DNA from: Botryllus schlosseri
Taxonomy: Eukaryota
DNA: 64,000 nucleotides
NCBI GenBank assembly: GCA_051294905.1
Contig: CM119380.1
Coordinates: 14,632,001 to 14,696,000 of the forward strand
Direction of reading: 5' to 3'
Shown piece after piece: positions 43,309-62,548 of this stretch. The stretch's first letter is position 1. Each line of letters starts with the position of its first letter. Position numbers and translations under genes: made by a program. Under the pieces are notes generated by a model. The model saw only the letters and a program-made list of their open reading frames with translations, was not told where the DNA came from and did no database searches.

Positions 43309-43489
43309 AGTAGTATATAACAGCACGTTCTCATGCGGACCAATTAAATCGCAGCATTTGATCACGTGACTACTTTTGAATTTCAAATCAAACAGAGAAA
43401 AGCGCGCGAAAGAGTTATATCAATAGTGCTTCAATAGGGACAATGGGTGACAATATATGTCAATAACGGGCGTGACCGTCATTGTATTG
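43309..43489 (+). repeat. Left TIR of the Polinton
   Basis: 180/181 identical to the reverse complement of 62368-62548; looser similarity continues about 35 bp further. Confidence 0.96.
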
Positions 43490-43658
43490 ACAATGATTGT
43501 GTCAGCTGATTGTATAATGGGTGTTAATGGGTGTGGCTTAGGAGAGCGAACCGTGACAGCATAATGGGGTGTGTGCTAGCGAACGTTACGGTATTGTGCA
43601 ATGGTTAATACCATAGACAAGTCCAAAGCTAGTGATATTACACCATACACAGCTTTGA

Positions 43659-43868
43659 TCACGTACCAAATTTGTAATTATATATTTTTTTAGCATCACT
43701 ACAAATCATTCTTATTCCTATATACAGTCCAATTATTCCTATACAGCCATCCCATCGCAAGCTCCATCCCAGTTCCTCTCCCAGTGCTTGTCCAAATGTT
43801 CGAAGTATATTTTCGCTCGTTCTGGTGTTACACCCTCCATTGTTCAGGATTTGCAGTCTTCTGCCCAT
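43659..43868 (-). CDS. Possible small membrane protein, 69 aa
   Basis: ATG-initiated with a hydrophobic stretch GCIGIIGLYIGIRMIC; no other support. Confidence 0.25.
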   Translation of the reverse strand: MGRRLQILNNGGCNTRTSENILRTFGQALGEELGWSLRWDGCIGIIGLYIGIRMICSDAKKIYNYKFGT

Positions 43869-44195
43869 CTCGCCTAGCGTTCGTTGCTGTTGTTTTGATT
43901 AACGCGTCAAAGTGGGTACTTAGACCCACTCCAATCACGTGACTACTTTTGAATTTCAAATCAAACAGAGAAAAGCGCACGAAAGAGTTGTGTGTCCGTT
44001 ATTGCACAATGGGTAATAACCTAGCGATATTGCACCATACATAGCTTTGATCACGTGACAAGTTTGCAATCATATATATGTTTATTCCGCGATGGTGTGA
44101 TCATCATTGTATTGACAATGATTGTAGAAGAAGTTTAGGGGACTATTTAAGTCACAAATTTGATGCTAAGCCATTCAATACGAAATTGAGCGACG

Positions 44196-44522
44196 ATGGG
44201 AAGAATAGTGATTAACGATGTCAAATTCGAATCTCCAACAAATATTACAATGGACCAAACTTCAAAGAGTATAATAGTAACGGGTGTAGCGACGATAAAA
44301 TTTGAGCAGCAGTTCATGATAAAACGCCGTGAAGGATATACGTGGGTGATCATACGTGGCGAAGACAACGAAAAAAAATCAATGAAGATTCATGAGGAAG
44401 ATGTCCGCATAAATGGAAAGTGTATTACTATCAAACAAGGAACCGCCGTGGAATTAAACAGCCTATTCATGAAAAATTGTTACAGATTAGAAATGAGCGA
44501 CGCATCTCATCTCATACATTAA
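44196..44522 (+). CDS. Hypothetical Polinton protein, 108 aa, beta-rich
   Basis: ATG in good context, TATA-like TATTTAAG about 50 nt upstream. Confidence 0.6.
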   Translation: MGRIVINDVKFESPTNITMDQTSKSIIVTGVATIKFEQQFMIKRREGYTWVIIRGEDNEKKSMKIHEEDVRINGKCITIKQGTAVELNSLFMKNCYRLEMSDASHLIH

Positions 44523-44686
44523 TATATTTTTTGTTGTAGATTTGAAATGCGCTACGCATGTCATTTCATACATTAATCATATCATTCATTATTCTGTAAC
44601 CTATTTCTATTTACATGTATAATTAGATTGAATTATAATTTATTTGAAAGCAAGTGCGACAGTTCGAATACTATCATTCGATAGAC

Positions 44687-45166
44687 ATGCGTGCTTTGAA
44701 GCGTTTGATATATGAACAAGCAAAATTTAAGCAGAATGCTTACGAAGGGATCCGAGCAGGACCATTCGATGAAAAGAATATGTATAGTTGGTGGGCAACG
44801 ATCCAAGGACCAAACGGAACGCCCTACGAAGGTGGTGTGTTCAGATTATCAATCGAATATTCTACCGAGTATCCATTCAAGCCTCCTAAAATGCGATTTG
44901 AAACACGGATATTCCATCCTAACGTAAGCTGTAAAGGTACCATATGTGTCGATATTTTACAGAAGGAATGGTCACCAGCGATGACAACGTCCACTCTACT
45001 GATATCAATACGTTCATTGCTCGCTTCACCAAACCCTTATGATCCGATGGATCAAGAGAGTGCGGAAATGTATTTAAAAAATAAGGAACGTTATTTCCAA
45101 CTAGCTACTCAATATACCCGTAGACATGCAATGGAAGATACGCAAGTCACCCAGCAAGAAAAATAG
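44687..45166 (+). CDS. E2 ubiquitin-conjugating enzyme (UBE2D-like), 159 aa
   Basis: GP.GTPYEGGVF, YPFKPPK, FHPNV, catalytic ICVDIL, WSPA motifs; intronless; AATAAA at about 45229. Confidence 0.95.
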   Translation: MRALKRLIYEQAKFKQNAYEGIRAGPFDEKNMYSWWATIQGPNGTPYEGGVFRLSIEYSTEYPFKPPKMRFETRIFHPNVSCKGTICVDILQKEWSPAMTTSTLLISIRSLLASPNPYDPMDQESAEMYLKNKERYFQLATQYTRRHAMEDTQVTQQEK

Positions 45167-45275
45167 TGTTGTTTTAATCCACCGCGAGTAGCGTGGAATT
45201 GCATTATACATTCCGTATTGTTCTTGTAATAAATAATAAAAATCAACGTCTGGTTGCGTTGTTATTCGTCTGAAT

Positions 45276-45346
45276 GGGGACTTAGCTCAATGGTAGAGTA
45301 TCTGTCTTGCAAATAGAAGATACGGGTTCAATTCCCGTAGTCTCCA
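45276..45346 (+). tRNA. tRNA-Ala (anticodon TGC), 71 nt
   Basis: GGGGACT TA GCTC AATGGTA GAGT A TCTGT CTTGCAA ATAGA AGAT ACGGG TTCAATT CCCGT AGTCTCC A: all four stems pair, G3:U70, A73, A/B boxes, TTTT at 45351-45354. Confidence 0.92.
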
Positions 45347-45430
45347 CGACTTTTCTATTGATGCTGTATCTGACTAGAACACGAATGAGGAGCCGTAGTT
45401 GTTTTGCGATTTTATTACAGACATATCAAA

Positions 45431-45772
45431 CTAATAACAAGCATCATAAAATCGCGCGTTGTGTAACGCTTCGAATACGATTATATTTTTTACAACGATC
45501 GCATTCCCTTTAAATTCTATAAGAATAGGACAGGTACGCGGTAAACAGTAATGTTTGTCTTTGCAGACAGTGATTGTCGGAGATTCAATCTTACCGTAGT
45601 GAGGAACATGCAGTTTCTTCACTACGATCTTATTGGTACGATACATTATTTCACATGAGAAAGGAATAGTGATAGATCTCACTTTCGGTAATACAATCGT
45701 TTTTTCATAATACCTACGATCTCCATTACTACTCAAGCGTAGGGGACCAATACAAATGCGAGCCATAGTCAT
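45431..45772 (-). CDS. Hypothetical Polinton protein, about 111-113 aa, beta-rich
   Basis: TATA-like sequence upstream (~45810), AATAAA just past the stop. Confidence 0.6.
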   Translation of the reverse strand: MTMARICIGPLRLSSNGDRRYYEKTIVLPKVRSITIPFSCEIMYRTNKIVVKKLHVPHYGKIESPTITVCKDKHYCLPRTCPILIEFKGNAIVVKNIIVFEALHNARFYDACY

Positions 45773-45857
45773 GATTTACGTTCACATTCTTCTCCACAGC
45801 AAAATAGCGTATATAATAAGAATTCCAGAAATAACAGCGCGGTTGCAACGATAGTTA

Positions 45858-46598
45858 TTATTTCGATTTCTTCCATTGAGATTTTATCCAACTGAAACTT
45901 CTTTTTCGAATGAGATGATCGTGTTCATCCAATTTGAAGCTTGATGATATCGAACACTTTTGTCTCTTATCTAGTTGTCGCAATTTACACATAAGATCGA
46001 AGAATTTGATTTCGTCGTTTTCACGTATGACGGTTCTGAAATTCTTTGCAAAAGCACTACCGTCTTCAAAACACCAACTGATTTGATCGTCACTAACTGC
46101 ACTTATGAGAACAGTTTTGGATTTTACGTCTCGTTTGCGTTTGAGTGCTTGCGAAGCAGCGTCTTCTCGTAAATGAAATTTCAAATCGGCAGAGTTACCA
46201 CTATAACACTGCGCAAACATGAGTAGGTTTTTTGTATCTTTACGAAAGCTTTTTAATAGCTCACACATATCATCATCGAGTAGATGCCTATCATAAAATA
46301 CAAATCCGGAATCGCGAGCTTCAGGATCATTTTCTTTTGTGTTATTTGGACATGAAAAGCCGTGACCGACGAAATATATGAAGTTTATCTTGGCGCTACT
46401 ATCGGCCATCGTTTGAAGCTCTCTGGAAAAATTTCCAAGAGTGGCTTGCTCTTCACGCAACACTTTGATATCTTCAGTCTTGAATTTGAATTTCTGTACT
46501 AAGATATCTGTCATAATCTGAATGTCTTGTAACGTTCCTTCATTTTCGACATGGTGCGGCTTTCCGCGATAACACATCGATACTATAAGCGCATTCAT
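45858..46598 (-). CDS. Metacaspase-like cysteine protease (peptidase C14 / caspase-hemoglobinase fold), 246 aa
   Basis: NALIVSMCY...GTLQDIQIM...F.F..EDIKVL...ATLGNF...FIYFVGHG (His) ... MFAQCYSG (Cys) ... VLISAVSDDQIS...GSAF follows metacaspase order; TATATAA about 35 nt upstream of ATG 46598. Confidence 0.85.
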   Translation of the reverse strand: MNALIVSMCYRGKPHHVENEGTLQDIQIMTDILVQKFKFKTEDIKVLREEQATLGNFSRELQTMADSSAKINFIYFVGHGFSCPNNTKENDPEARDSGFVFYDRHLLDDDMCELLKSFRKDTKNLLMFAQCYSGNSADLKFHLREDAASQALKRKRDVKSKTVLISAVSDDQISWCFEDGSAFAKNFRTVIRENDEIKFFDLMCKLRQLDKRQKCSISSSFKLDEHDHLIRKRSFSWIKSQWKKSK

Positions 46599-46662
46599 GA
46601 TGACACTGACTAGATCCCGAGCAATAACCACTTATATACTCCGATGAATACACACGAATTTA

Positions 46663-46980
46663 TTAAAAGCGATTTCTCAAAAATTCCCATAATTTTAGTT
46701 TACGAAAAACGACAAGTTCACCGCGGTTACGACGAATAATTCTATGCTTCGACAACACATCTATATACATACAATTTTTAGGAAAACGCACTGGTATCCA
46801 ATCAGACCCGCGGAAAATTGTAACTTCGTTATCATGCGGGTAAATGCGTATGTGAAACGGCTCGAAAGAAATTCTATGAATACGATTTGCATTCATGACA
46901 ATAATTTTTCCTTGGACTTTCATGTAGGCCTTCTCATCATCTCCAAAGTATTCTATGATGGTGAAACTAGTTGCTCCCAT
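46663..46980 (-). CDS. Hypothetical Polinton protein, 105 aa
   Basis: Tightly packed between protease and metacaspase, same strand. Confidence 0.55.
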   Translation of the reverse strand: MGATSFTIIEYFGDDEKAYMKVQGKIIVMNANRIHRISFEPFHIRIYPHDNEVTIFRGSDWIPVRFPKNCMYIDVLSKHRIIRRNRGELVVFRKLKLWEFLRNRF

Positions 46981-47414
46981 TTCAAGATTCTAACGAAGTC
47001 CACTACGATATCGTCGTTCTCTTTTCGATCATCACCGAAGTGATCCAAATACTGTAGTGTGCTCATACCAGTAGAGCGTTTGACGATATATGCAATTGCA
47101 TGAGCTCCACAAGCGTCTGACCTTTCATGCTGTAATGGTTTTATTGAGCTAGTATAATTTTCGGGATCAAGGAAACTCGCAATCTCAATCCTGAATGGAG
47201 TGATACCCAGACTATCGTGAAAATGGGTTTCATATTGATCAGCATATATGCAAACCCAGTGACTACCTTCCTTGTGACTTTCATCATAATTGATCACAAT
47301 TGAATAAGGAGGTTTTGGGCGCTGAGGGAGTTGATCAATAGGGAAATTCCCTAGATAGTGTTGTTTCGTAGCATGGTAACTATACAATATTTCATCTATT
47401 TCTTGTCCGTTCAT
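46953..47414 (-). CDS. Adenain-like maturation cysteine protease, 153 aa
   Basis: GSHWV (His), HDSLG (Asp), LQ...SDACG (Gln, Cys); start overlaps the capsid stop as ATGA. Confidence 0.93.
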   Translation of the reverse strand: MNGQEIDEILYSYHATKQHYLGNFPIDQLPQRPKPPYSIVINYDESHKEGSHWVCIYADQYETHFHDSLGITPFRIEIASFLDPENYTSSIKPLQHERSDACGAHAIAYIVKRSTGMSTLQYLDHFGDDRKENDDIVVDFVRILKWEQLVSPS

Positions 47415-48688
47415 ATCACGGTCACCGTGCGAGCTTGGCTTATTTCCAGTATTTTTTGAAATTCCATAAAGCACAGCAGTGTCGTTTCGCTCTCAACACC
47501 TGCCGCAGGAAAGGTGATTCGAAGACTGATCGTTCCACTTTTCTGCAGCTCGAAGCAGTCATCTAAATCGTCACCTCGCAAATTATATGCTAGAAGCGTG
47601 TATCCATTTGCGAACTCGGAAGGGGAAATCAAGCCTTTTTGTCGTTCGATGGCACCCATAGATTGAATGAGATTTAGGTAGGCCTCGGAATAATGATTGT
47701 TTTCAAAATCAAGTTCGTAGCCACCTTCCGGCATAAGGAAACCATTTACTTTCAATTCAACCCGATTCATTTTATTATGAATAAAATTATATGGGTTCTT
47801 ATCGAGTGCTCCTTGGAATGCCTCAGTTTTCACCATGGCTATAATCAAACGTGTCGGCAGGGTTCCCGAATACAGATTACCAATATCGATTTGAGTGGTG
47901 TTAGCCGCAAAAGTTCGAGTCAGCAGCTTCATGTCCATAAAGGGATACCTAGCCGGTGCGTCTACCATCAAGGCAGATTTTACATCTTCTGTTACCCGCA
48001 CTCCACATAGGTGCAATTCTTTTTTGATGATTTTGAAATTGCTGGTAGCGGCTCCAAACAGAAAGAAACTTTTCGGATTCAATGTCAATTCGAACTCTAA
48101 CGGAACCTCGTCCAAAATATAGCGGTCTTGCAAACACAACCCGTGATGTATTTTACCGCGAATTTCAACGACTTTGCTCCCGGCATACGGCAAACTTCTC
48201 GCCTTATGACCTTTGTTAACCGCATCATTGCCTAGGCCCGAATCATCCAATTGCTTCTCTGTGTCTTTGACCCATCCTTGTGTAAGAAGCGTTGTCTCTT
48301 GCACGTCGTGAGGTGTGAACAGATAGTGTAAGTAGGCCGAATAACATTGTAGCTTCACGTCTTGTTTCAGGGTATGGTTCCCGACTTTGATGTGAAGTTG
48401 AGAAATTAGAGAATCAAGAATGTTATTCACAACTCCAATGCTGTCCGTGGCAGCTAGATCCGCATCGCCTTTCAATAGTTTCAAGCGAAATAAAAAATAG
48501 GATTCGCTTAAATCAATAAAATCGTCACATCCTTCATAGCGGTAAATAATTACGCTTGCGTTGTCCGACACAGGCGGAATCTTAATGATCCGTTTCTTCT
48601 CCACGCTTGTTTGGGTAGGTGGGAGTTGAAAAAGATCCAAGCTAGGATGTACGCCTTCGGCAGATTTCGCGTGAATTAGCTCCGTCAT
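47411..48688 (-). CDS. Major capsid protein (double jelly roll), 425 aa
   Basis: Polinton-type start LDLFQLPPTQTS, P+LIIAMV...F.G....NP+NF.H, C-terminal GT+SL...F; position in the morphogenesis block. Confidence 0.9.
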   Translation of the reverse strand: MTELIHAKSAEGVHPSLDLFQLPPTQTSVEKKRIIKIPPVSDNASVIIYRYEGCDDFIDLSESYFLFRLKLLKGDADLAATDSIGVVNNILDSLISQLHIKVGNHTLKQDVKLQCYSAYLHYLFTPHDVQETTLLTQGWVKDTEKQLDDSGLGNDAVNKGHKARSLPYAGSKVVEIRGKIHHGLCLQDRYILDEVPLEFELTLNPKSFFLFGAATSNFKIIKKELHLCGVRVTEDVKSALMVDAPARYPFMDMKLLTRTFAANTTQIDIGNLYSGTLPTRLIIAMVKTEAFQGALDKNPYNFIHNKMNRVELKVNGFLMPEGGYELDFENNHYSEAYLNLIQSMGAIERQKGLISPSEFANGYTLLAYNLRGDDLDDCFELQKSGTISLRITFPAAGVESETTLLCFMEFQKILEISQARTVTVI

Positions 48689-48738
48689 CTTTCGCGAGTC
48701 TGCTAGCTAATGAAAAAATAAAGTAGGGAGAGTCCTAT

Positions 48739-49107
48739 TTAATCGAAAATGTCCCGACGGCGCTTTTTCCGTTTCGTGGTCTTTTTTCTAGGTGCCTTTC
48801 TCTTGCCTAGGAAGTTGTCAAGAGCTTTGCTAGCTGCTTGTTTACCTCTTATTTTGAAGCTTTCACCGACGTTTTGCCCACGCAATACGTCAGAAGCTAC
48901 TTCTGCTCCTGTATGGAGTAGCTGTTTGCCGAGAGCTTTCGCCCCTTTTGATATCAATGGTACAACACTTCGTCCCAAACTACGAAAGAGATTTCCTAAA
49001 CCGTGTCCTCTTTGCACTCGTCCTCGAAAATAGTTTATGCCATTACCACTTTGCACACGATAGTATTGTTGAAAGGCATCGCGATCACAACAGTAATGTG
49101 CTCTCAT
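48739..49107 (-). CDS. Conserved Polinton virion protein with QxGxG motifs, amphipathic helix and basic tail, about 122 aa
   Basis: QSGNG and QRGHG followed by LGNLFRSLGRSVVPLISKGAKALG; C-terminal RKKTTKRKKRRR. Confidence 0.75.
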   Translation of the reverse strand: MRAHYCCDRDAFQQYYRVQSGNGINYFRGRVQRGHGLGNLFRSLGRSVVPLISKGAKALGKQLLHTGAEVASDVLRGQNVGESFKIRGKQAASKALDNFLGKRKAPRKKTTKRKKRRRDIFD

Positions 49108-49834
49108 GATGACGTAAAGCAAGTGTGATATCAATCATGGACCCCTTCAGATTTATAGCCGTACCTTTATCGTCTTTGATACTAATCTGAATTCGACGAG
49201 CGTCTTCCGTAATCATAGGGAAAAAGTATATTTTTTCGAATATATGATGTTGATATTCATTGACACTACTCGTAATGGGGATGTTTCGTAATAGCGGAGC
49301 TTTCGTGTCCCCGACTGATTGCGGTCGAATGAGATCGGTATAAATTAATAAATTGGTGATAGGCGTAATGGAATCCCTCAGAGTGATCTCTGAAGTTAAA
49401 TAATTCCCTCCTAGCAGCTTTTTCTTCCTAAGCTTTCCATACACGAAAACCGGATTTCTGACTCTGGTTGGATTCTTCAGGAAATTAGGAAACGCACCCG
49501 ATTTGTAAGGTGGAATGACTAACATACCAGTAGAACTTCCTAGCTGGTTAATATATACTTGGTCCTGCGTGCGATTGATTCTATCAATCAAACTTTTGAA
49601 GTCATAATAATTACCCTTGGGGTAATAATAATGATTTTTACTTCCCACTTGAATCAGAGGCGATGTTTTCTCATCCTGAAATTGCCATAACAGAGCGTCG
49701 AAAGCAGGTAAAGTAGGTTGGAACTCGTTGCGAATCGAGAACTCCGCTAGGCCCAGTTCGTATTTTCCTGCAATCGGTCGTGCTAGCTCGAGAACAAAAT
49801 CTGATTCCAAACTGCTAATGTGAATGTATTTCAT
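49085..49834 (-). CDS. Minor capsid (penton-like) protein 2, 249 aa
   Basis: C-terminal LLIYTDLIRPQSVGDTKAPLLRNI...ISIKDDKG motif typical of Polinton pentons. Confidence 0.8.
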   Translation of the reverse strand: MKYIHISSLESDFVLELARPIAGKYELGLAEFSIRNEFQPTLPAFDALLWQFQDEKTSPLIQVGSKNHYYYPKGNYYDFKSLIDRINRTQDQVYINQLGSSTGMLVIPPYKSGAFPNFLKNPTRVRNPVFVYGKLRKKKLLGGNYLTSEITLRDSITPITNLLIYTDLIRPQSVGDTKAPLLRNIPITSSVNEYQHHIFEKIYFFPMITEDARRIQISIKDDKGTAINLKGSMIDITLALRHHESTLLL

Positions 49835-50661
49835 AGTGCGATACCGCGCTTTCGGAATTGAAGTACAGCGCTCGATGGAGCGCTTCGAAACGGAATTTCA
49901 CCCCCTTTGTGATCCAGCAAGGAAATTTTTACCCGTTCCAATCTATTTATACTTAGCGGAAGAAAGAAAGGTTTTACGTAATATTTTGAAAACACCTTCT
50001 TATCTCCTTCGACTTTTACAACTCGTAATAAACGCTGTAGTGAACCGCTAGACTCTTGGGGTTCAATGATGTCGCAATGAACGTATACGAAATCGATTTT
50101 CGACAAGGGTCGTACATCAAAATTGAGATGTATTGTCTTGTCAGTAAAAAAGTATGCGGATAGCTCTGCTCTATTCTTCGGCAATATGAAACGTAGGAGC
50201 GTAAGGGTAACTACCGCCAATTCTAGATGCTCAAGTGTCCCAGTATAATCGTACTCTCTGGTGTCGATTCGATATCGCGTATCCTCTCCCGGTCTTGCAC
50301 TAGCTGCAATGTTTTTGTGTGGAATCGAAACCGTCAGGCTATCACTTTCAGGAAAACACTTGACTTTCACATCGGGATTAATGCTCTCCAACGATTTAAA
50401 CATGTCATATACAGATTCATATTCACCAATTTTGAACTTCAATCTTCTTGTGACTTCACTGGGACCCATAATGTCGAAACCGTAGTAGCTATTTGTGATT
50501 GGGATCCGTTCGTTAAAATCGGTTGGGAAGCCAATCTCAGTCAACGCGACTTCGCTTCTTTCTACATTTCTGGGGGTGTCTAGTTCGTTGGTGTAAACCG
50601 CAGCTGTATTTTGTGGAAACCTGTCCATGGAGGCATTGGAAAATAACGTAATATAACTCAT
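49831..50661 (-). CDS. Minor capsid (penton) protein 1, 276 aa
   Basis: YITLFSNASMDRFPQNT...EVALTEIGFP start and VYVHCDIIEP...LLRVV...ISLLDHKG end. Confidence 0.85.
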   Translation of the reverse strand: MSYITLFSNASMDRFPQNTAAVYTNELDTPRNVERSEVALTEIGFPTDFNERIPITNSYYGFDIMGPSEVTRRLKFKIGEYESVYDMFKSLESINPDVKVKCFPESDSLTVSIPHKNIAASARPGEDTRYRIDTREYDYTGTLEHLELAVVTLTLLRFILPKNRAELSAYFFTDKTIHLNFDVRPLSKIDFVYVHCDIIEPQESSGSLQRLLRVVKVEGDKKVFSKYYVKPFFLPLSINRLERVKISLLDHKGGEIPFRSAPSSAVLQFRKRGIAL

Positions 50662-50870
50662 AGTTTGGGTATCTTTGGAGCCGGTAACATATATCCCACA
50701 CACGATGATAACAGCGACACCCAAAGCTCTTTGTTGTCTTGCACGACACTCAAATTATACAGCGAAAAACTCACGATGAGCAGTATAATTATAACTTGAG
50801 CAATGAATTGATAAAAGTTACGGTTCGACGATATCTTTTTGATCGACCCAGGTATTGAATTCCGGTCCAT
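50658..50870 (-). CDS. Small two-helix membrane protein, 70 aa
   Basis: FIAQVIIILLIVSFSLYNL and ELWVSLLSSCVGYMLPAP; stop overlaps the penton start (ATGA). Confidence 0.7.
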   Translation of the reverse strand: MDRNSIPGSIKKISSNRNFYQFIAQVIIILLIVSFSLYNLSVVQDNKELWVSLLSSCVGYMLPAPKIPKL

Positions 50871-51822: not shown

Positions 51823-52274
51823 AGCTTCCCAAAGTAGCGTTGATTGGGCTTTTGTTGACGTGGAGTATCGAGTTCTTTCCAGTTAAGCGGAGGTTTGAGG
51901 TCGACCTTTTTCTTTGCTTTTTTCTTGGGTTTTTTCTTCTTTGGAGTATCTCCCTCCTGTTTAGTAACGCTCCAATTAAACGCGTGCGGGGGCCCCGGCG
52001 TCGCGTTTGTGTCATCAGATGGTGGCGCGCGCGCTGCGTCTGCTTTAATGACGGGCGGCGACGCGTTTTTATCGTCAAGTGACGAAGCGTTTGCGAGCGC
52101 TTTTATCGTCGCGTCATTCTTTCTTAGGTTTCTCAAGACATTGATACCGTGTTTGTAAAGCGCTAGTTTTTGCACGCGAGTCAAATCCGAGTCTCTGATT
52201 TTGGCAATATGTTTGTCAAATTTCCTTTCGTATCCATCTTTTGTTAGTAGCGGTGGAAAATAGAGCTCACGCAT
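51810..52274 (-). CDS. Basic hypothetical Polinton protein, 154 aa
   Basis: Packed between core genes; Lys-rich tail ending PPLNWKEL. Confidence 0.65.
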   Translation of the reverse strand: MRELYFPPLLTKDGYERKFDKHIAKIRDSDLTRVQKLALYKHGINVLRNLRKNDATIKALANASSLDDKNASPPVIKADAARAPPSDDTNATPGPPHAFNWSVTKQEGDTPKKKKPKKKAKKKVDLKPPLNWKELDTPRQQKPNQRYFGKLWTN

Positions 52275-53360: not shown

Positions 53361-56300
53361 TTACAAAGCAAGCGGTACAGTATGAATCCCATCACTCAAT
53401 ACAATTCTTTTATAGTAACCGTATGATAGAGCGGAACGATATTGATGATATGTATATATATCTCCCTGAAAGCAACGGAATCCGGAGTTATACCCTCCTG
53501 ATATAGAACGGTTTTGCAATACACCTTTGAAATCTTTGAAAGTTTTGCGGGCCGTTTTACTCAAACCTTTCGATGAATATTTATCTGTATCACCCGAGCA
53601 ATAGTAGGTTTTTGAATTGAGGCCAACAAACCCCCGTCCACTCCATTCTACTTTAAACAAACCCGGTGTTCGCTTAGAGTAATTATGAGCAGCGACACAG
53701 CACGGTTCATCGATTTTGAATGCGACCGGGTCCCTCTCGAAGTCTGTTTTATGCTTAACGCACGCCTGCTGAACCAACCACTGATCATGAACTTCAAAGA
53801 ACTCTTTACGCTTTGAAGGTATGATCAATGAGTAGATAGAATCAGCTGATATCGCTAAATAACAGCTGTCGGTGTCAAGTTCAAGATGAAATTGATCACA
53901 ATCGTTTATGTAGACGTGGAGGAAGTCATACATGAACGACAACATCCGTTGCTTACTGTGATTAAATATGAAGAAGCCTACGATGACGGGTTGATCAAGT
54001 TGAGTCGTATCGGGCCGTGAGGTTACTTCAATTAAGTCCGAATCAATTTCATCAGCGTCGATAAAATTCGGTTTTTTGATGAGCGCTTGAACTTCTTCGC
54101 AAGTCACATATTTGTGATTTTTATATTTGGCTGGATTTTGTATAGTGGTTCCGAAAGCACTATTTCCAAGATTCTTGAAGGTTAATGCCTGCATTTCAAG
54201 TGCATGGTCTCTAGGAATAACGTCACCTTTACGCCGTAGCGTAGTTACGCGATCTACGAAGTTGCGAAATAGTCTTTTAGGTTCATATTCCAAACATTGA
54301 TAAACACGTGTGACCACCATTCCGTGACGCAAGTACCAACTCAACAAGTCGGTAGTAACCAATTGCTTTTCGATGAAATAACTGGACGCGAGCGCTTTTT
54401 TTGGAAACTTGACTTTGTTTTCCCTTGCGTATTGAGCCATATGCGGACCGATATCACATTCATTAATTTCGATGTGCTTAAAGAAAGGCGGTAACTCTTC
54501 AAACTTAGATTTCAAATGATCTGGGCAGTGCGCGTCGCATTCTATCGCACCGAAAAAGCGATTGTTAACGACTCGATCGAGTATTTGTTCTTGCGATAGT
54601 AAATATTCTTTTGTCACATTCCTTTGTAAATGTGCAACGAGGCGCGCAATGTCTGGATCGCGCTTCATTGCTTTCCATTCACATTCGCGCACTCGAATGA
54701 CCTGATATCCTAGGCGTTCAAAATAGGCGGTGGTTTCTTCGGTTTTAATGCGTCGATTATGATTAATATTTTGATTATTAGATATACAAGGACACGAGTG
54801 CCACCAACATCCGTCCATGTTGAATATTAACTTCCGCTCCGCTGAGTATCCATCTACGCTAATTCTACGGGCTCCCAGTTTCACTTGCGGACCGTTCCAA
54901 GCGTGACGAATCGGAATACCGCGAACAATGCTTTGATAAGTTAACCACTCGAGTTCGATCATGGACGGATAAGTCTGTTTTCTATGAAATTTCTGTTTCA
55001 CTTCATCATACAGCCAACGGGTGACATATCCAGTTGGCATATTGAGATCAATGGCGTGCAAATATAATGCGTTGCTGTCATACCCTACTATAGATTTCAC
55101 GTCTTTGGCTGCGTCTCCATACTTCAAAATGCGAATTTTGGTCTCGTCTGCCATTGCATACCGGTTTGTAATTTGTGCCAATCCACCGATTAAGTTATTA
55201 GTTACAGTGTGATGGAGATCGGCATTGGCTTTATTGAATAAAGCGATTTCCCACCTTTCATCGAACATAAGTCGATTAGCTATACTCGGTAAGCTGACGT
55301 GATTTTTGAACATGTCAATCCCCAGTTTTTTATAAAAGTCGAAGTGGTTATTTACCGCGACGAGAAAGCCGACCACATCACATTCATTGTAGTATTTTAA
55401 AAAATCCCTCATTGTTTTCATATCGAGACGCTTCCAAGTATCGACGCATTCTTGGTATTGTTCAGCTGTAATATTATGCCCGCGAAGACTACTATAAAAG
55501 CTATCGTGTGGCGGTAGCGATGTTTCTTTCAATTTATCAATATGCGTCATATATTCGTATGGAAAGAAAAATTTATTGTTTACTCCATCACCGTACACTT
55601 TCAAATACGCATCCAGGCTATATCCCGGAGCGAGGAATAGAGATATATCTAGAAATTTCAATTTATTTGTGGAGATAGTGAGGTAACTGCTGTTTCGCTT
55701 CAATACAAAAAAGCCGCTCTCCTCTCGCAAAAGAGCAATCAAATATTTTTTACACAGATTTAAATCGTAGCGAGCCGAGTTGAATCCGATTACGGGTATT
55801 TGATCTAACCACGTTTCAAAGCGATGATACAACAACTCCAGGTACGATCGCGTTTTAATCGGATCAATCACTTTACGTTCTTCAATCAAGTCGCGAAGAG
55901 CGGTCAACTCGGTGTCATATATAGCACGCATTTGCGAAGACGCAATTTCTTGAATTTCATGAAGCTTATCGACCATTTCTTTAATTAGATCACGCGGGTT
56001 GCCATTGGAAATAAATGTAGTTGTTTCGTTCGTGACATTATCACACAGTGAGACCGAGAGCGGGACATGTTTACTGGTAAATTTTACTTTGGCTGTATCG
56101 GGCTTGAGATTTTCTTTTACTAAGAGACTCTCAAAGTCAAAGCAAATTCTGAATTTGTAAAAACGTTTTTCTTTACTAACAAATATACCTTCATTTTCCA
56201 AATCTTCAAACACCGTCGCTTTAGGACGATAAACACCAGAACCGTAGCGATACCTTTTCTCAGAATTACAATGATTTTTAATATGTCGTTTTAAACTACT

Positions 56301-57227
56301 TTTCAAGGTAAAGAATGTTTTACACGAATCACACATAAAAGTAGACGTATAATTCTCTATATTCAAAATTAAAGAACAGTGATTTTCGAGCATGTGAATA
56401 TGAATTGTGAGTCCAGACGCATTGGAAGTACGACGCAAGACCGTGGTTTGTTCACGTTTCTCGTAAAGCAATATTCTAACGTTAAAACACGCTTCCACTT
56501 TCGATAGTTGGTCGAGGGATATACCATTGGCAACTGAAATTCCGTAACGATTTTCAAATTGCGTAGTCAATTGAGAAACATGACTTTCGTCACGTTTTTT
56601 AATTAATCTAAATGAGACGCATCGAAACAGACAAAGATTATCTGTATATGGTACACCTTCACGATTACGAATAAAAGCACTGATATATCTACATTTGGAT
56701 AATCTTTCCATTTCTTCTGAGACAACGCCCCCGCTAAGTAAAGGTCTTTCCATTTCATACAGGAATAAAGTAATGTGTAGCACCTCCGAACAAACAAATT
56801 TTGTATCCGGTCTGACTCGATTCGCATAATCGTAACCGGCCGATAAATCAATTGCATTTCTAAACGAATCAAAATCTTCACGCGATATGATAGTTCTTGG
56901 GACATCGAGGACAGCTTGCGATGATTGGGGGTGAAAATACGTATATCGCTCAGACTCGCGATTATATAGTAGATACCCAAAGCCATAATTTATTTTAAAT
57001 TGTCTAAATCGTTGCGGGTATATACTTGCGATACGCGCGTGAATGTCTGCGGGGTCTCGTTCAATCATCCGAATATTGACTATATGTCGCACGCGATTTC
57101 TCGAAGTCCACGTTGAGTCAATGATCGAATCGTAGTGCTCTTCAATTACTTCGACGGCGGCATCTTCAAAGCCCAAGGATTCATCGACGATCCAATCTCG
57201 ATCCAAATATCGCCTGCGTAGAGTCAT
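53361..57227 (-). CDS. Protein-primed family B DNA polymerase (pPolB), 1288 aa
   Basis: Exo I FDFES, Exo II GFNSARYD, Exo III YNECDV, Pol YDSNALY, KNLGNSAFG, LDTDS; C2H2 finger and VSR-like insert. Confidence 0.97.
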   Translation of the reverse strand: MTLRRRYLDRDWIVDESLGFEDAAVEVIEEHYDSIIDSTWTSRNRVRHIVNIRMIERDPADIHARIASIYPQRFRQFKINYGFGYLLYNRESERYTYFHPQSSQAVLDVPRTIISREDFDSFRNAIDLSAGYDYANRVRPDTKFVCSEVLHITLFLYEMERPLLSGGVVSEEMERLSKCRYISAFIRNREGVPYTDNLCLFRCVSFRLIKKRDESHVSQLTTQFENRYGISVANGISLDQLSKVEACFNVRILLYEKREQTTVLRRTSNASGLTIHIHMLENHCSLILNIENYTSTFMCDSCKTFFTLKSSLKRHIKNHCNSEKRYRYGSGVYRPKATVFEDLENEGIFVSKEKRFYKFRICFDFESLLVKENLKPDTAKVKFTSKHVPLSVSLCDNVTNETTTFISNGNPRDLIKEMVDKLHEIQEIASSQMRAIYDTELTALRDLIEERKVIDPIKTRSYLELLYHRFETWLDQIPVIGFNSARYDLNLCKKYLIALLREESGFFVLKRNSSYLTISTNKLKFLDISLFLAPGYSLDAYLKVYGDGVNNKFFFPYEYMTHIDKLKETSLPPHDSFYSSLRGHNITAEQYQECVDTWKRLDMKTMRDFLKYYNECDVVGFLVAVNNHFDFYKKLGIDMFKNHVSLPSIANRLMFDERWEIALFNKANADLHHTVTNNLIGGLAQITNRYAMADETKIRILKYGDAAKDVKSIVGYDSNALYLHAIDLNMPTGYVTRWLYDEVKQKFHRKQTYPSMIELEWLTYQSIVRGIPIRHAWNGPQVKLGARRISVDGYSAERKLIFNMDGCWWHSCPCISNNQNINHNRRIKTEETTAYFERLGYQVIRVRECEWKAMKRDPDIARLVAHLQRNVTKEYLLSQEQILDRVVNNRFFGAIECDAHCPDHLKSKFEELPPFFKHIEINECDIGPHMAQYARENKVKFPKKALASSYFIEKQLVTTDLLSWYLRHGMVVTRVYQCLEYEPKRLFRNFVDRVTTLRRKGDVIPRDHALEMQALTFKNLGNSAFGTTIQNPAKYKNHKYVTCEEVQALIKKPNFIDADEIDSDLIEVTSRPDTTQLDQPVIVGFFIFNHSKQRMLSFMYDFLHVYINDCDQFHLELDTDSCYLAISADSIYSLIIPSKRKEFFEVHDQWLVQQACVKHKTDFERDPVAFKIDEPCCVAAHNYSKRTPGLFKVEWSGRGFVGLNSKTYYCSGDTDKYSSKGLSKTARKTFKDFKGVLQNRSISGGYNSGFRCFQGDIYTYHQYRSALSYGYYKRIVLSDGIHTVPLAL

Positions 57228-57409
57228 TTATGCTATCTGTAAAAACATAGAACATTAGAAATTGAGAAGCTTATTTCAATCACAGTTTTGCTTACCGTTT
57301 GCGCTTGTATGATACGGTATCCAGTCGTAAAGTCGTGTGTCAACAAAGTATTGAAAAAATATTACCTATATTTACTCTATATCTGTAAAACAAAGCACAA
57401 TTTCACTTA

Positions 57410-57820
57410 CTAGAAAACGAAATTATATCTCAAGCGCAATTTAGATTGGTTTAGACCGTACAGAAACATGAACTTAATTCTGTCCAATCTAGCAATCTCA
57501 GTATCACGAATATTCGAGTCTGTTTTATCGTCACACAACAGTTTTTCGATATCTTTGATCACGTTTTTTGCAATGACAAGAAAATTTTTTGTCCAGTCTT
57601 GTTCGAATCCTTCCATCGAAATAAGGCGGTTCCACATCGCTTGCATTTTCAAATGATCGTCCATCATGTGTTCGAAGTAAGAACCAATATCTTGACGAGG
57701 ACGCTTTCGTGAAGGTTCTTGTGGATCCAGTAGACTTTGATAGAAGGCCGACATATCGCTAATTTGTGTCATGTCTCTCTGAGTGGTGGATGCAGCTATA
57801 TCGGCTAAGTTATCATTCAT
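57410..57820 (-). CDS. Hypothetical Polinton protein, about 136 aa, possibly spliced
   Basis: Open frame preceded by a strong acceptor (TTTTGTTTGCAG at 57830); a GTAAGT donor overlaps its stop. Confidence 0.55.
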   Translation of the reverse strand: MNDNLADIAASTTQRDMTQISDMSAFYQSLLDPQEPSRKRPRQDIGSYFEHMMDDHLKMQAMWNRLISMEGFEQDWTKNFLVIAKNVIKDIEKLLCDDKTDSNIRDTEIARLDRIKFMFLYGLNQSKLRLRYNFVF

Positions 57821-57981
57821 AATGTTAAGCTGCAAACAAAATTCGAATTAGTGACAATCGTTCATGCAAAAAAATATATACATCAGCCAAGTTTTTCAGT
57901 CATAATGTCAAGGTGCAAACAAAATTCGAATTGGTAACAATCGTTCATGCAAATAACAATCGTACAAGCAAAACATATTAT

Positions 57982-59580
57982 TCAAAGACTATCATTATAA
58001 GCTGCATTTTTTCTGGTTCTGAAGCTAGATGCTCTAAGATACAGTTCTTCAGCCAAGGGATCATTCTCAACACAGCCATTAACTCCTTTAATACAAGTTT
58101 TAGTTCTCTCTATTAAATCGAACAGAACATCACGACGGGCATGTTTGTTGAAACTGACCAGAGAAGGTGAGTAAATACCCCTTCCAAATTTTACGATGAC
58201 CGTTTTAGCCCTGAACGATATAGGATGTTTGACAGTCATCAAGTCAGAGCCATTTTGTTTATCACAAAGCATGAAGCAGCAAGATGGATTAATAATCCCG
58301 TATTCACATTGCACTGCTGTACGATTTATAGTCAGAATTGTTTCCTGTAAAGCAGTATTTTCAAAGAAAAGCGTTCCGCAGTTCGGAAACACAGAAATAC
58401 ATTTTGTAGCATCATAATATTTGAAAGCTTTCAAATTTTCCAAACTCGACAGCAAATAATTTGCTGTTTCACTACCGAAAAGCATTTCGTGCAATACTTC
58501 CTTTCCAGAATGGCAATGCCCTTCCAGAAAGAAGTGTGGAGCAAGTAATTTTTCATGAGTCAAGCTTTCACCGACAGCTACTATCAGAGCGGCACGAAGA
58601 AAATTGAGACTCCGTTTCAACCCGCCATATTGTATTTCAACAATATTTTCTTCCAGATATCTATACATGACTGTTCCATCATGTATTTCTGTCATCTCTC
58701 TTAATCCAACTAGCCAACGCATGAATAAGCGATTCTTCTCATCATACTCCTGTTCTGCTTTGGTAGTGTCATGTATATGTCTTTGCATTGGCCTAAGGAC
58801 CGGAGGATCATGCTGGATCCAATATCTAGGAAAGATCCTTATTGACGATTGATCTGGCGATGATGGTATATTCGGCTTTGGTATAGAGCCAACATTAGAG
58901 TCGGAAAAACCACTTGAGATATGAGTGGAATCGGCGACAAGCTCACTGAAAGTAGGTTGCTCTGTAACTTGCGATGTGCTCTTCTCTATACGTCGCAGTA
59001 GGATTTGCTTCGCGATCTCATTGCTATCACGAGAAATTTCACCTAGCGGCTCGCTACTTTCGGCAATCGCCTCCGCACCAAGAGACAAATCCATTTCCGT
59101 GTCGGGATTGCCTACTGCTTGTCCCGAAGCTTGATGATTGACAGAAGGGGACGGATCGCTAGTCACGTTCTCAACGTCATAAACGGGTTGTTCACCTACT
59201 GGTGTTGATTGACTCAGAGGTATCAATTGATCCTTAAGTTGGGTCTCGTTGCTAATTAGCTCGATGTCATTAGCCTGTTGTTTTGATGGGGATGAATCAG
59301 TTTGGAATGCGGGACATATCTGACGTATGACAACGCGTTCGCGAAATTCTTCTTCGCTCAAAGATTTCAGAAGAACTTCTTTAGCAGATGGGATCTTCGT
59401 TATGGGTCTAAAGTATCGATCCATAGCGACGAGTTCCTCATCATCTTTATCCATTTGATCACATTTCATATGATTCGGAATTTCTACACTCAATGCATGG
59501 TCACTGCTTTCTCGGGTTGATTGGTTGCTTGGCAACTGCTGACTATCATCACCCATAATTACTTCAACTTGCAAAGACAT
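57982..59580 (-). CDS. 532-aa protein: disordered acidic N-half plus degenerate SF3-helicase-like C-half
   Basis: FFLEGHCHSGKE resembles a Walker A; downstream spacing matches SF3 motifs B, B' and C, but catalytic residues are altered. Confidence 0.55.
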   Translation of the reverse strand: MSLQVEVIMGDDSQQLPSNQSTRESSDHALSVEIPNHMKCDQMDKDDEELVAMDRYFRPITKIPSAKEVLLKSLSEEEFRERVVIRQICPAFQTDSSPSKQQANDIELISNETQLKDQLIPLSQSTPVGEQPVYDVENVTSDPSPSVNHQASGQAVGNPDTEMDLSLGAEAIAESSEPLGEISRDSNEIAKQILLRRIEKSTSQVTEQPTFSELVADSTHISSGFSDSNVGSIPKPNIPSSPDQSSIRIFPRYWIQHDPPVLRPMQRHIHDTTKAEQEYDEKNRLFMRWLVGLREMTEIHDGTVMYRYLEENIVEIQYGGLKRSLNFLRAALIVAVGESLTHEKLLAPHFFLEGHCHSGKEVLHEMLFGSETANYLLSSLENLKAFKYYDATKCISVFPNCGTLFFENTALQETILTINRTAVQCEYGIINPSCCFMLCDKQNGSDLMTVKHPISFRAKTVIVKFGRGIYSPSLVSFNKHARRDVLFDLIERTKTCIKGVNGCVENDPLAEELYLRASSFRTRKNAAYNDSL

Positions 59581-59944
59581 CTCGAATACTTTTCACTGAT
59601 TCGCTCAGATTTAGTGATAACTCATTTCACATTCGGCTAATCTTATACGAAAATGCTTCGCGCCAGAATCACATAAGAAAAATGTTCGCTCACTAACGGA
59701 CAAACATTAACCGTTAGGATTTGAAATTGTTGATAGATAGTAACAGCCCGTTCGAACAAAAGACATTCCCAACCGTCGTTTTCGCTTTGTTGGTAGAGCA
59801 AACAATGCATTGAGTGTTTGAAAAGCAATGAATAGTAGACGGTAAAACGAACCTCTATCAAATTTCTTAAAACAAAGTAAACTCAGATTGAACTCTAAAA
59901 TAAATGGAAGTGCGCGAAAGTAACGTTCGTTACAATTCATACCA

Positions 59945-60201
59945 ATACTTTCAACGAATTTTTTAACCAACAACATATTCAAACTCTGGAATGTCATAAA
60001 TTTAAATCAAAGTACGACCAATCATTTCAAAGTTGGAAATCTACCAATCAGAATACAGTATCGTGTTCTAGACCGATACTTTCAATGTATTTTTAACCAA
60101 CAACATATTCGAACTTTGGAATGTTGTAAATTTAAATCAAACGACCACCAAGCATTTCAAAGTTGAAAAATCTTCCAATCAGAATACAGCATCGCATTCT
60201 A
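59945..60201. promoter_or_regulatory. Tandem 126-bp duplication with CCAAT boxes in the divergent-promoter region
   Basis: 59945-60070 ~ 60076-60201; CCAATCAGAATACAG in both; TATAAAA at 60208-60214 ahead of the BIR gene. Confidence 0.6.
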
Positions 60202-60256
60202 CACAGCTATAAAAGCTCCCATTCTTATAAATATTTCAGTTCTTCAATATAACGAG

Positions 60257-60610
60257 ATGGTGTCTATTAAGCCGTTAGGTGCACATCAGGCAATGAAGAA
60301 TGAAGTCGGTGATATCGTTTATGAAATTTGTAATCGAAATGCGAAGCAGAACGAAGCTGTGTTTTTCAATATGAATTTTGAACGTAGATTACGTTCGTTC
60401 GAACCTTACAAAGAAAATTTCAACAGTAGTGCCTATCAATTAGCAGAATGTGGATATTTTCATCTCGGCTTCGAAAATTTAGCCAAATGCTATATGTGTG
60501 GAAAACTATTCGAAAATCTCTGTCATTGTGATAATGTATGGGTTGAGCATGAACAAGTGAATAGTCGTTGTGCTTTACTAAGTAAAAGAAATGACAAGAC
60601 TCATTCTTAA
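60257..60610 (+). CDS. Single-BIR inhibitor-of-apoptosis-like protein, 117 aa
   Basis: RRLRSF...LAECGY...exact Cx2Cx16Hx6C zinc motif (CYMC...EH...RC); no RING. Confidence 0.9.
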   Translation: MVSIKPLGAHQAMKNEVGDIVYEICNRNAKQNEAVFFNMNFERRLRSFEPYKENFNSSAYQLAECGYFHLGFENLAKCYMCGKLFENLCHCDNVWVEHEQVNSRCALLSKRNDKTHS

Positions 60611-60691
60611 TCTATTTTCTCGTGTGAGGATTCATGTTTTCACTGAATAATAATAACTATGTTGTGTTTTCTATATTAATTTAGAATCAAT

Positions 60692-61276
60692 ATGAGCATC
60701 GCAATAAGAGGTGATAGTAGAATTGTTGGTGGTCCAACAATGAAAAAAGAGTTATATGTTTTTAATAACATATCGAAGCTACGACTTGAAAGCATAAATG
60801 ATGATGTAATTGATCATCATCAATTGCGCTTACATCGTACTTCGGGTGCCATTCAACGATACAAAGCCGTCTTCACACACAAAGGGGGTCTCGTCGCGAC
60901 CTATACTCGTGATGGTGTTGAATGTTTCCAGCAGATTAACCCAGCAGACGAATTTACAATTTATTCTCCAAGTATGTTAGATTGTAAATATCTAATGAAA
61001 TTCTGTACTAATAAACTATATCTTTATATAGGTAACGTGGTACAGGATCCTGACCGTGGTCCGCTATCGTTCATTCTGCAGGAAACATCTCGCTTCATCG
61101 CAGAATCGGGACAAATCCAATCGAAAGATCATCCTCAAGCGAACTTCGCGACTAATGGCATGAATGCGGCGCCGCAAAACGCCTATTATGGAATGAATGC
61201 TGGCGTAGCGCCGCCACCGCCACCTCAATACGGACATCGCCCTGCTGGGTGGATGCAAAATTCTCAGCAATTTTAA
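60692..61276 (+). CDS. Hypothetical 194-aa protein with Pro/Gln-rich tail containing PPxY
   Basis: C-terminal APPPPPQYGHRP; AATAAA at about 61305. Confidence 0.65.
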   Translation: MSIAIRGDSRIVGGPTMKKELYVFNNISKLRLESINDDVIDHHQLRLHRTSGAIQRYKAVFTHKGGLVATYTRDGVECFQQINPADEFTIYSPSMLDCKYLMKFCTNKLYLYIGNVVQDPDRGPLSFILQETSRFIAESGQIQSKDHPQANFATNGMNAAPQNAYYGMNAGVAPPPPPQYGHRPAGWMQNSQQF

Positions 61277-61508
61277 ATTACTGGTTGAATATGTGTTAAT
61301 GGAAAATAAAATGGTAAATTCCTATTTGGTCTGAATAATAAATCTCATCCTACATTTGTGTCTCTCTCTCTATTCTTAAAGCTTTGGTGTTAGAAAAAAT
61401 TGTGTCAGAATCACGAAGCTAGTAGCTCTATATCAGAACGAGACGGTAACGAGTATGCACTGAAAGCACAACCTAACAAAGTCGAGACAAGACAATACAA
61501 ATCACCAT

Positions 61509-61706
61509 TCAATAGTTTATTTCGGTATGCGTACAGTTAGTCAAAGAATATGCTCCGATATAACGTAAAATCAATTTCATTGCTTCTTGGTCAGTAGCTA
61601 AGCAGTCCTCTTCGTGATATTTCACGCTGAAAGGGTATAACAATTCGGGAGCATCCGTTGATTTCCAATTTAGCATCAGCAAGAATAGTATGAATATTAG
61701 CTTCAT
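61509..61706 (-). CDS. Small putative secreted protein, 65 aa
   Basis: Signal-peptide-like MKLIFILFLLMLNW, two Cys, NCT sequon. Confidence 0.6.
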   Translation of the reverse strand: MKLIFILFLLMLNWKSTDAPELLYPFSVKYHEEDCLATDQEAMKLILRYIGAYSLTNCTHTEINY

Positions 61707-61870
61707 TGCCCGAAGACTTTACAGATAGCAGCTTTAAGATCGTTGCAAGCTTCTGCAATCTCGGAATCTCTTTTTTTCTTGTATATATTGATACAGCAAT
61801 AGCTTTTAATGCAAGAGCATAATATCACGTAGAACGCGATATCGGAGTCTTCACTCAGAAGTATATCCAT
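61703..61870 (-). CDS. Small Cys-rich putative membrane protein, 55 aa (below ORF-track cut-off)
   Basis: MDILLSEDSDIAFYVILCSCIKSYCCINIYKKKRD...; TATTTAAA upstream; its TGA overlaps the next ATG (ATGA). Confidence 0.55.
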   Translation of the reverse strand: MDILLSEDSDIAFYVILCSCIKSYCCINIYKKKRDSEIAEACNDLKAAICKVFGQ

Positions 61871-62007
61871 TTCTCATGTCCCACTCACTCGTAGTGGTGT
61901 TTAAATAACTACTTTTGGCGCGTTAATTCCCAACGGTAAACTCATTGAGGCATTCAAATCTGGTAACGGTAAATCAAATGGACTGTTCTCATTTTTTTCT
62001 GGTCGAG

Positions 62008-62271
62008 CTAATTCCGTGTGGTAGTACAATCATACATACAACTATTAGACAATTCATCGAGTCTCTCAATTGTAGCACATCGACCATTTTTACGAACCCA
62101 TATTTGTATCATTTGATAACATTGTTCAGTTAAGTTCTTGGGATCCGCGTATTCACAATCAGCAATTTCTAAGTCTGTTAACTTAAGTTGATCTCTAGCA
62201 AATCTTTTCCAAGTCTTGTAATGAACCCTATCTATAATGTCGTATACATCAGAAGCTGTAATCCCCGACAT
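62008..62271 (-). CDS. Stand-alone death domain protein, 87 aa
   Basis: WKRFARDQLKLTDLEI...DPKNLTEQCYQMIQIWVRKNGRCATIERL matches the death-domain helix pattern. Confidence 0.85.
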   Translation of the reverse strand: MSGITASDVYDIIDRVHYKTWKRFARDQLKLTDLEIADCEYADPKNLTEQCYQMIQIWVRKNGRCATIERLDELSNSCMYDCTTTRN

Positions 62272-62367
62272 CTTCCAATTGCAATCCTTGATTTCTTTGA
62301 TGGTATAATCTCATAAGCGACATACATATATATCGTTGTGATACACCTATTATGCGATCAGCTGACG

Positions 62368-62548
62368 CAATACAATGACGGTCACGCTCGTTATTGACAT
62401 ATATTGTCACCCATTGTCCCTATTGAAGCACTATTGATATAACTCTTTCGCGCGCTTTTCTCTGTTTGATTTGAAATTCAAAAGTAGTCACGTGATCAAA
62501 TGCTGCGATTTAATTGGTCCGCATGAGAACGTGCTGTTATATACTACT
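62368..62548 (-). repeat. Right TIR of the Polinton
   Basis: Reverse complement of 43309-43489 with one mismatch. Confidence 0.96.

Follow-up and report, generated by a model that had tools for sequence, protein, structure and literature searches.

An intact Polinton/Maverick in Botryllus schlosseri carries four cell-death and ubiquitin genes, including a candidate caspase-prodomain decoy

For Polintons and adintoviruses, an ancient kinship with adenoviruses and with the large DNA viruses is generally assumed. Among the latter, African swine fever virus, a large nucleocytoplasmic virus of ~170-190 kb, holds a homologue of the inhibitor of apoptosis proteins (IAPs) with one BIR domain and without a RING, together with an E2 ubiquitin-conjugating enzyme of its own. 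The vFLIPs, which consist of DEDs only, and the CARD-only proteins act on their respective caspases as prodomain decoys. In mobile elements, BIR, BCL2-like and ubiquitination-linked domains are found in the giant Burro long terminal repeat (LTR) retrotransposons of planarians, which the authors read as meddling with host apoptosis and ubiquitin (PMC6431247), and the main text of Starrett et al. (2021; PMC8502044) reports gasdermin-like genes in adintoviruses along with homologues of IAP and Bcl2. The extent of host-control machinery in such small elements is poorly known. Here, we describe a structurally intact and very recently integrated Polinton/Maverick of adintovirus type in Botryllus schlosseri, at positions 43309-62548 (19,240 bp, without a single N) of a 64,000-nucleotide stretch that was analysed as a whole and is called the window below (assembly GCA_051294905.1, contig CM119380.1, positions 14,632,001 to 14,696,000 of the forward strand). 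The element holds four separate death- or ubiquitin-related genes, and we consider it probable, from their sequences, that its accessory genes keep the carrier cell alive and that a caspase-prodomain decoy is among them.

The element is bounded by terminal inverted repeats at 43309-43489 and 62368-62548, identified by an inverted-repeat search as arms of 181 nt each with 99% identity and a single mismatch between them. The left arm starts AGTAGT and the right arm ends ACTACT, giving the 5'-AG...CT-3' ends of Polintons, and both are bordered by a perfect 6-bp target-site duplication, AATTTG, at 43303-43308 and 62549-62554. The insertion target was an otherwise open minus-strand reverse-transcriptase open reading frame (ORF) of a host long interspersed nuclear element (LINE), the 3' part of which (42139-43308; Pfam RVT_1 4e-26, profile positions 49-203) and the 5' part of which (62549-63199; RVT_1 profile positions 3-50) directly flank the element on its two sides. 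Between the repeats we identified a protein-primed family B DNA polymerase (PolB, recognised via homologues with PF03175), an integrase with an rve domain, and a virion module whose major capsid protein and protease were assigned by homology and synteny, their own Pfam matches being weak or absent. All of the core genes are uninterrupted ORFs with lengths equal to those in relatives, and none is broken. With its recent integration and intact virion genes, the element may be infectious.

An earlier sequence-only reading of the stretch had placed genes for an E2 enzyme, a metacaspase-like protease, a BIR protein and a death-domain protein within the element, and had proposed Pfam searches as a check on them. 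Both the coordinates, which put all four genes between the terminal inverted repeats, and Pfam bear this out, with UQ_con, Peptidase_C14, BIR and Death all matched above the curated Pfam thresholds and key residues present in each.

The death-domain gene (62008-62271, minus strand) encodes a protein of 87 amino acids (aa) that consists of a death domain only (Pfam Death 6e-11; FADD death domain in PDB 9e-7), and that matches the death domains of TNFR1 and RIPK1 in PDB as well as that of FADD, placing it in the Death subfamily. An exhaustive HMMER search of 1.84 billion representative sequences returned 38 matches for this protein. The best of these, P0125, is itself a stand-alone death domain of 83 aa and is 60% identical, and the next are the N-terminal death domains of proteins of 480-570 aa that also carry Peptidase_C14, and are hence death-domain caspases, the named ones being from the ascidian Styela clava. 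The closest caspase, P0126 (529 aa), comes from run SRR25569784, which belongs to the run series that also yielded the sister elements described below; its residues 1-72 align with the window protein from Met1 to residue 72 at 51% identity, and its prodomain scores ~60 bits, against ~32 bits for FADD. Since the best matches beyond P0125 are the N-termini of death-domain caspases, we take this gene to be a copy of just the prodomain of a host death-domain caspase, which suggests a prodomain-only decoy of such a caspase. By themselves, these matches point to an ascidian as the likely host. Death-domain caspases are known in Hydra, where they are recruited by FADD homologues (bioRxiv 10.1101/2019.12.13.875351).

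One further match, P0130, was considered as a viral death-domain gene and rejected, as it is an exon of a cellular death-domain/NB-ARC gene. Separately, on the 7.3-kb Logan contig of P0126 there are two uninterrupted ORFs of the caspase family, one on each strand, for the death-domain caspase of 529 aa and for a C14 protein of 522 aa; this contig may represent RNA, an intron-less gene pair or the cargo of another element.

The second cargo gene (60257-60610, plus strand) encodes an IAP-like protein of 117 aa with a single BIR (Pfam BIR 1.3e-10), nearest in PDB to the BIRs of NAIP, XIAP and DIAP1. Its zinc ligands, CX2CX16HX6C, are intact, and by Pfam the protein holds the BIR domain alone, without a RING E3 domain. 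We found one relative, P0124, which is 74% identical.

The third, at 45858-46631 on the minus strand, encodes a metacaspase-like clan CD peptidase (Peptidase_C14, 1.4e-12), with a caspase-haemoglobinase domain and a His-Cys dyad. It matches the plant metacaspases-4 and -9 (2e-7 in PDB) and a bacterial homologue, and not animal caspases; the catalytic residues, His90 and Cys142, were aligned to those of metacaspase-4/-9 and are invariant in all four aligned C14 sequences. Relatives are few, just three among 5.8 billion proteins (87%, 64% and 50% identity), all of them in Logan assemblies, and the only C14-type match in the IMG/VR and JGI metagenome scans was a metacaspase-like gene of a giant virus, at 23% identity. 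Both of the closest contigs (87% and 64%) show the order of the window, namely the end of the major capsid protein gene, protease, small ORF, C14 and an ORF of ~111 aa. Because gene order and the His and Cys residues are kept in these sisters, we read the C14 gene as a stable member of the minus-strand block in its lineage, and not as an arm gene. The sequence-only reading had assigned the cargo to both terminal arms, which holds for the genes of the outer arms but not for C14, and had set the limits of a contiguous minus-strand core at 46953-57227; the block is wider and extends over 45431-59580, where it holds the replication, integration and virion genes as well as C14.

We considered whether a single captured death-domain caspase could have given rise to both the C14 and the death-domain gene, as its two halves, and rejected this, as the C14 protein is not similar to the P0126 caspase domain; the two genes were thus acquired separately. 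As a separate observation, contigs of run SRR25569784 (Logan) hold C14 genes of two lineages, those 87% and 64% identical to that of the window, so that one sample contains several diverged lineages of this element family side by side.

That a caspase-fold protease travels together with two classical death inhibitors, and that it is conserved in three diverged lineages, would fit a selfish kill-and-rescue pair, in which the protease is a latent killer, the BIR or death-domain proteins are the element's own antidotes, and cells or progeny that lose the element suffer. Such a pair would resemble the toxin-antidote cargo that has been reported from nematode Mavericks. Polintons are known as vectors of cargo genes in nematodes (Widen et al. 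2023, as cited in PMC11131425). In the element described here, however, the genes concerned belong to separate transcription units at opposite ends, and we saw no sign of drive or incompatibility. Moreover, BIR domains are not known as metacaspase inhibitors, and we regard a kill-and-rescue pair as quite improbable.

The fourth cargo gene, at 44654-45166 on the plus strand (first ATG at 44687), encodes a ubiquitin-conjugating enzyme E2 of the UBE2D/UbcH5 class (Pfam UQ_con 5e-47). It matches human UBE2D2 in PDB from end to end (2e-45, ~49% identity), with the UBC fold assigned by this match and the HPN motif and catalytic Cys kept, and is about equidistant from the UBE2D-class enzymes of human, worm and yeast. 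The UBE2D family is very conserved, and an identity of ~49% to it is therefore not that of a fresh host capture. Relatives in viral contigs come from metagenome-assembled genomes of giant viruses, at 44-48% identity, apart from one fragment of 36 residues.

In the reading that we favour, the accessory genes would ensure that the infected or carrier cell stays alive and quiet. The death-domain-only protein would occupy a death-domain platform, such as a FADD-like adaptor or a receptor, and block recruitment of the real caspase; the BIR-only protein would have processed caspases or antagonists of IAPs as its binding partners; and the E2 would supply host RING or HECT ligases, of the IAP, TRAF or Nedd4 types, redirecting ubiquitination. 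Least clear is the role of the metacaspase-like protease, which may cleave either host factors, or viral proteins at basic residues. The cargo as a whole would presumably act against cell death. More tentatively, and with distinctly less confidence, we propose a fuller scenario in which a Polinton-class animal virus copied the death-domain prodomain of its host's death-domain caspases as a stand-alone decoy, and combined it with an E2, a BIR-only inhibitor and a metacaspase-like protease.

The same four proteins might instead target innate immune signalling and not cell death. The death-domain protein would then block assemblies of the MyD88/IRAK or IMD/FADD types, the UBE2D-type E2 and the BIR would interfere with the ubiquitin chains, dependent on IAP/TRAF, by which NF-kB is activated, and the protease, as a metacaspase/paracaspase-like enzyme acting on basic residues, would cleave signalling regulators. 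The UbcH5 class serves the RING ligases of both IAPs and TRAFs, and the assignment of the E2 to this class speaks for a target of this kind, as do the matches of the death domain to FADD, TNFR1 and RIPK1 and the position of the C14 protein nearer to metacaspases than to caspases. We nevertheless judge it unlikely, since the best death-domain matches are by far those to caspase prodomains (60 bits, against ~32 bits for FADD), and Pfam scans found no TIR, kinase or TRAF domain in the element.

Sister sequences allowed conservation to be compared for several of these genes. The relative of the BIR protein, P0124, lies on a sister fragment of 4 kb (L004), the DNA of which is 75-80% identical to the window and which has the same layout, with genes for proteins of 141 and 532 aa on one strand and the BIR gene and a gene for a 194-aa protein on the other. 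Measured against L004, the ratio of nonsynonymous to synonymous substitution rates (dN/dS) is 0.13 for the 141-aa gene, 0.17-0.38 for the 532-aa gene and 0.21 for the BIR gene, and against the contig of P0125 it is 0.37 for the death-domain gene, each value coming from a single pair with dS near saturation. For the N-terminal part of the 194-aa gene dN is 0.19 and dS is saturated against L004, as is dS for C14 against its 50%-identical relative (L003). The sequence-only reading had stated that sister copies with decayed cargo, at dN/dS near 1, would speak against it; where sister sequence exists the cargo is conserved, with the BIR and death-domain ratios just given and C14 retained. We take the cargo genes to be real and, where sister sequence could be compared, to be under purifying selection.

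Two more distant relatives (L001 and L002, 36% identity in PolB) are without all four cargo genes and have an RPA-like gene instead; the kit is thus a lineage-specific acquisition. Scans of IMG/VR and JGI metagenomes with the capsid protein, PolB, C14 and death-domain queries found nothing close. The element is seen only as an integrated copy, and this, together with its lack of a relative in the viral-contig and JGI metagenome collections and the different cargo of the elements with 36% PolB identity, could be taken to mean that it is a purely endogenous transposon, the arm genes of which are passenger host captures without a role for the element. The available evidence already points against this, and we hold it to be very doubtful: the cargo ORFs are intact with their catalytic and ligand residues kept, the E2 is too far from its very conserved family for a fresh capture, dN/dS stays below 0.4 between lineages 20-25% apart in DNA, and the position of C14 is kept in sisters.

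Several observations weigh against the idea of an anti-death kit, among them the single-pair, near-saturated nature of the ratios. P0125, the nearest stand-alone death domain, lies on two ~1-kb ENA metagenome contigs with no Polinton gene beside it. No action of BIR domains on metacaspases is known. The AlphaFold models of the C14 protein (predicted local distance difference test, pLDDT, 43) and of the 194-aa protein (pLDDT 37) are too poor to be used for a fold search. Finally, the L004 copy of the 194-aa gene contains one frameshift, or an assembly error, and is without a PPxY motif at the aligned place.

This 194-aa gene lies next to the BIR gene, at 60692-61276 on the plus strand, and has a counterpart in L004; its product, with fold unassigned, returned nothing in a PDB sequence search and has a C-terminal PPQY at residue 177. 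The sequence-only reading had named a PPxY protein here, and the motif is present, at residue 177 of 194, but is not conserved in the sister copy. It had also listed a secreted peptide in the right arm. This corresponds to a 65-aa ORF at 61509-61706 on the minus strand with a hydrophobic N-terminus, seen by eye, that may be a signal peptide; it is weakly supported, by a partial ORF in the corresponding position and orientation of one sister contig.

In the left arm, we additionally identified a tRNA-Ala(UGC) gene at 45276-45347 on the plus strand (ARAGORN; Rfam tRNA 73.4 bits, E 1e-14). It is canonical, with a G3:U70 pair, and a run of four T lies directly downstream. The tRNA could read both GCA and GCG codons, with a small codon effect. 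A role in serving skewed codon usage was considered and found weak support, GCG making up 24% of the Ala codons in the ORFs of the element against 14% in those of neighbouring transposons. Upstream of the E2 gene there is further a 108-aa ORF of doubtful gene status and no family (44196-44522, plus strand), the 3' end of which overlaps a tandem duplication of 2 x 47 nt that precedes the E2 gene at 44477-44577.

Other repeats include subterminal direct repeats at 43361-44125, in which parts of the terminal inverted repeat and adjacent DNA recur ~570-625 bp inward, and a 131-nt tandem duplication with CCAAT motifs at 59941-60209, ahead of the BIR gene in the divergent intergenic region. The subterminal and tandem repeats may be regulatory. 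TATA-like hexamers were found upstream of the BIR gene (TATAAA at -49 and -31) and of the death-domain, 65-aa and 113-aa genes, and AATAAA downstream of the E2, 194-aa, 113-aa and PolB genes, lying 15 nt past the stop codon of the 113-aa gene and 29 and 61 nt past that of the 194-aa gene. Such hexamers are only suggestive as possible signals of the cargo genes, their background frequency being ~0.25 per 200 nt; the sequence-only reading had given most of the cargo genes TATA and poly(A) signals of their own, and these are seen at only a part of them.

For the PolB gene of the minus-strand block (53361-57227), 139 homologues were found, of which the best has E 2e-250 and 36% identity and most carry PF03175; the nearest in databases are only 36-38% identical. 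The whole protein gave no Pfam match at E <= 0.001, and a scan in two parts up to E 5 returned no PolB family, only weak zinc-finger and MTES_1575 matches. At its N-terminus is a Cys/His domain, with a D-x-L-C-x-F-R-C signature and a His that are invariant in 18 relatives; this region looks OTU-like by eye, an OTU-like domain there being a trait of the proposed Adintoviridae, but gave no significant OTU match in Pfam or PDB. The protein also carries a C2H2 finger and, internally, a Vsr-like endonuclease domain (family profile against E. coli Vsr structures, E 2e-4), with Gly, Asp, Cys, His and Glu columns invariant in 18 of 18 PolB relatives.

Downstream of PolB in the same block are an A32/FtsK-type genome-packaging ATPase (52713-53333; Pfam Pox_A32 2.5e-10, 42% identity to relatives), a 102-aa ORF conserved in one relative (52372-52680), a 154-aa ORF of unassigned function that was not found in L001 and L002 (51810-52274), and the integrase, which is of retroviral type with a C-terminal chromodomain (50818-51822; Pfam rve 4e-12, Chromo 4e-11). 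Two penton-like minor capsid proteins, at 49085-49834 and 49831-50724, were assigned by homology and synteny to L001 and L002. These adjacent paralogues are weakly similar to each other (E 2e-5) and both match the single penton-like gene of those relatives, which looks like a lineage-specific duplication in the window element. They are followed by a 131-aa basic protein (48739-49134; 41-45% identity to L001 and L002) and by the major capsid protein, of the double jelly-roll type (47411-48688), which shares 29% identity (E 5e-56) with its syntenic counterpart in L001 and L002 and has a weak Pfam match to double jelly-roll-like proteins; an exact look-up of this protein found no record. The adenain-like maturation protease (46953-47474) was recognised by tblastn to genes of L001 and L002 with a faint Peptidase_C5 match. 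A 105-aa ORF between the protease and C14 (46663-46980) and a 113-aa ORF that ends the block (45431-45772), both of unassigned function, have counterparts of 89-104 aa and 111-115 aa, respectively, at the matching places in sister contigs. At the other end of the block lie two further ORFs of unassigned function, the 141-aa ORF at 57410-57835, with 81% identity in L004, and the 532-aa ORF at 57982-59580, which is conserved in L004, is without an LxCxE motif and gave no match in a PDB sequence search.

The element has a G+C content of 39.8%, similar to that of its surroundings, which consist of nested animal transposons, namely two BEL/Pao copies, a hAT, a Harbinger DDE gene and the LINE; no second Polinton copy or fragment was found within the window. 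LTR copies of BEL/Pao lie near 7947-8462, 15098-15607, 17972-18487 and 24906-25421, with a polyprotein ORF of 2075 aa at 18615-24842. The hAT ORF occupies 39888-41879 and is accompanied by a palindrome with 71-nt arms at 39738-39881, and the Harbinger DDE gene is at 6050-6874. The first 300 bases of the window are repeated exactly at an offset of 15,511 bp, and pairs of equally long ORFs lie that same distance apart, pointing to a segmental duplication of larger extent.

That adintoviruses carry anti-apoptotic cargo is, as a general idea, already known. The particular combination described here appears to be unreported, and so, especially, do the caspase-prodomain death domain and the metacaspase-like protease within it. 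The claim of novelty in the sequence-only reading must thus be narrowed: its IAP part was already documented, in the main text of PMC8502044, while for the E2, the metacaspase-like protease and the death-domain-only protein we found no report. Full-text literature searches, with the supplementary figures on adintoviruses outside their reach, returned no paper linking Polintons with an E2, caspase-family or death-domain gene, and none of these domains is mentioned in the survey of stony-coral polintoviruses (PMC11131425).

If our interpretation is true, a DNA virus-like element of 19 kb would hold a compact and previously undescribed module for the control of cell death. At least some of the four cargo genes are kept by purifying selection in lineages that have diverged. 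The death-domain gene would be a clear and datable case in which a virus-like element copied the recruitment domain of a caspase, and would point to death-domain caspases, a little-studied branch of invertebrate caspases, as a target that it pays to guard against. For an animal-associated element, the metacaspase-like gene is unusual.

In its core, the window element is the same as adintoviruses and other animal Polintons as described in the main text of PMC8502044, with a PolB, an rve integrase, an A32-type ATPase, a double jelly-roll capsid protein, penton-like and adenain-like proteins, terminal inverted repeats and an animal host. It differs from them in its accessory genes: no ORF of the element has the LxCxE motif of the adintovirus Oncoid proteins, and Pfam scans gave no PLA2 or gasdermin match at E <= 0.1 that would correspond to PLA2X or GasderminX/cupiennin, while the UBE2D-like E2, the metacaspase-like peptidase, the death-domain-only protein and the tRNA gene are additions that feature neither in that main text nor in any other paper that we found. 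African swine fever virus is likewise a DNA virus with both a one-BIR, RING-less IAP homologue and an E2, but searches of the window proteins revealed no sequence relationship with it. The Burro elements are retroelements that hold their domains inside a giant polyprotein, whereas the element described here is DNA virus-like and has separate small genes. Finally, the death-domain protein shares with vFLIPs and CARD-only proteins the form of a short protein made up of only the death-fold recruitment domain of an initiator caspase, but this domain is a death domain proper, like that of invertebrate death-domain caspases, and not a DED or CARD; with its predicted decoy role, it would be the first death-domain-type analogue of the vFLIPs.

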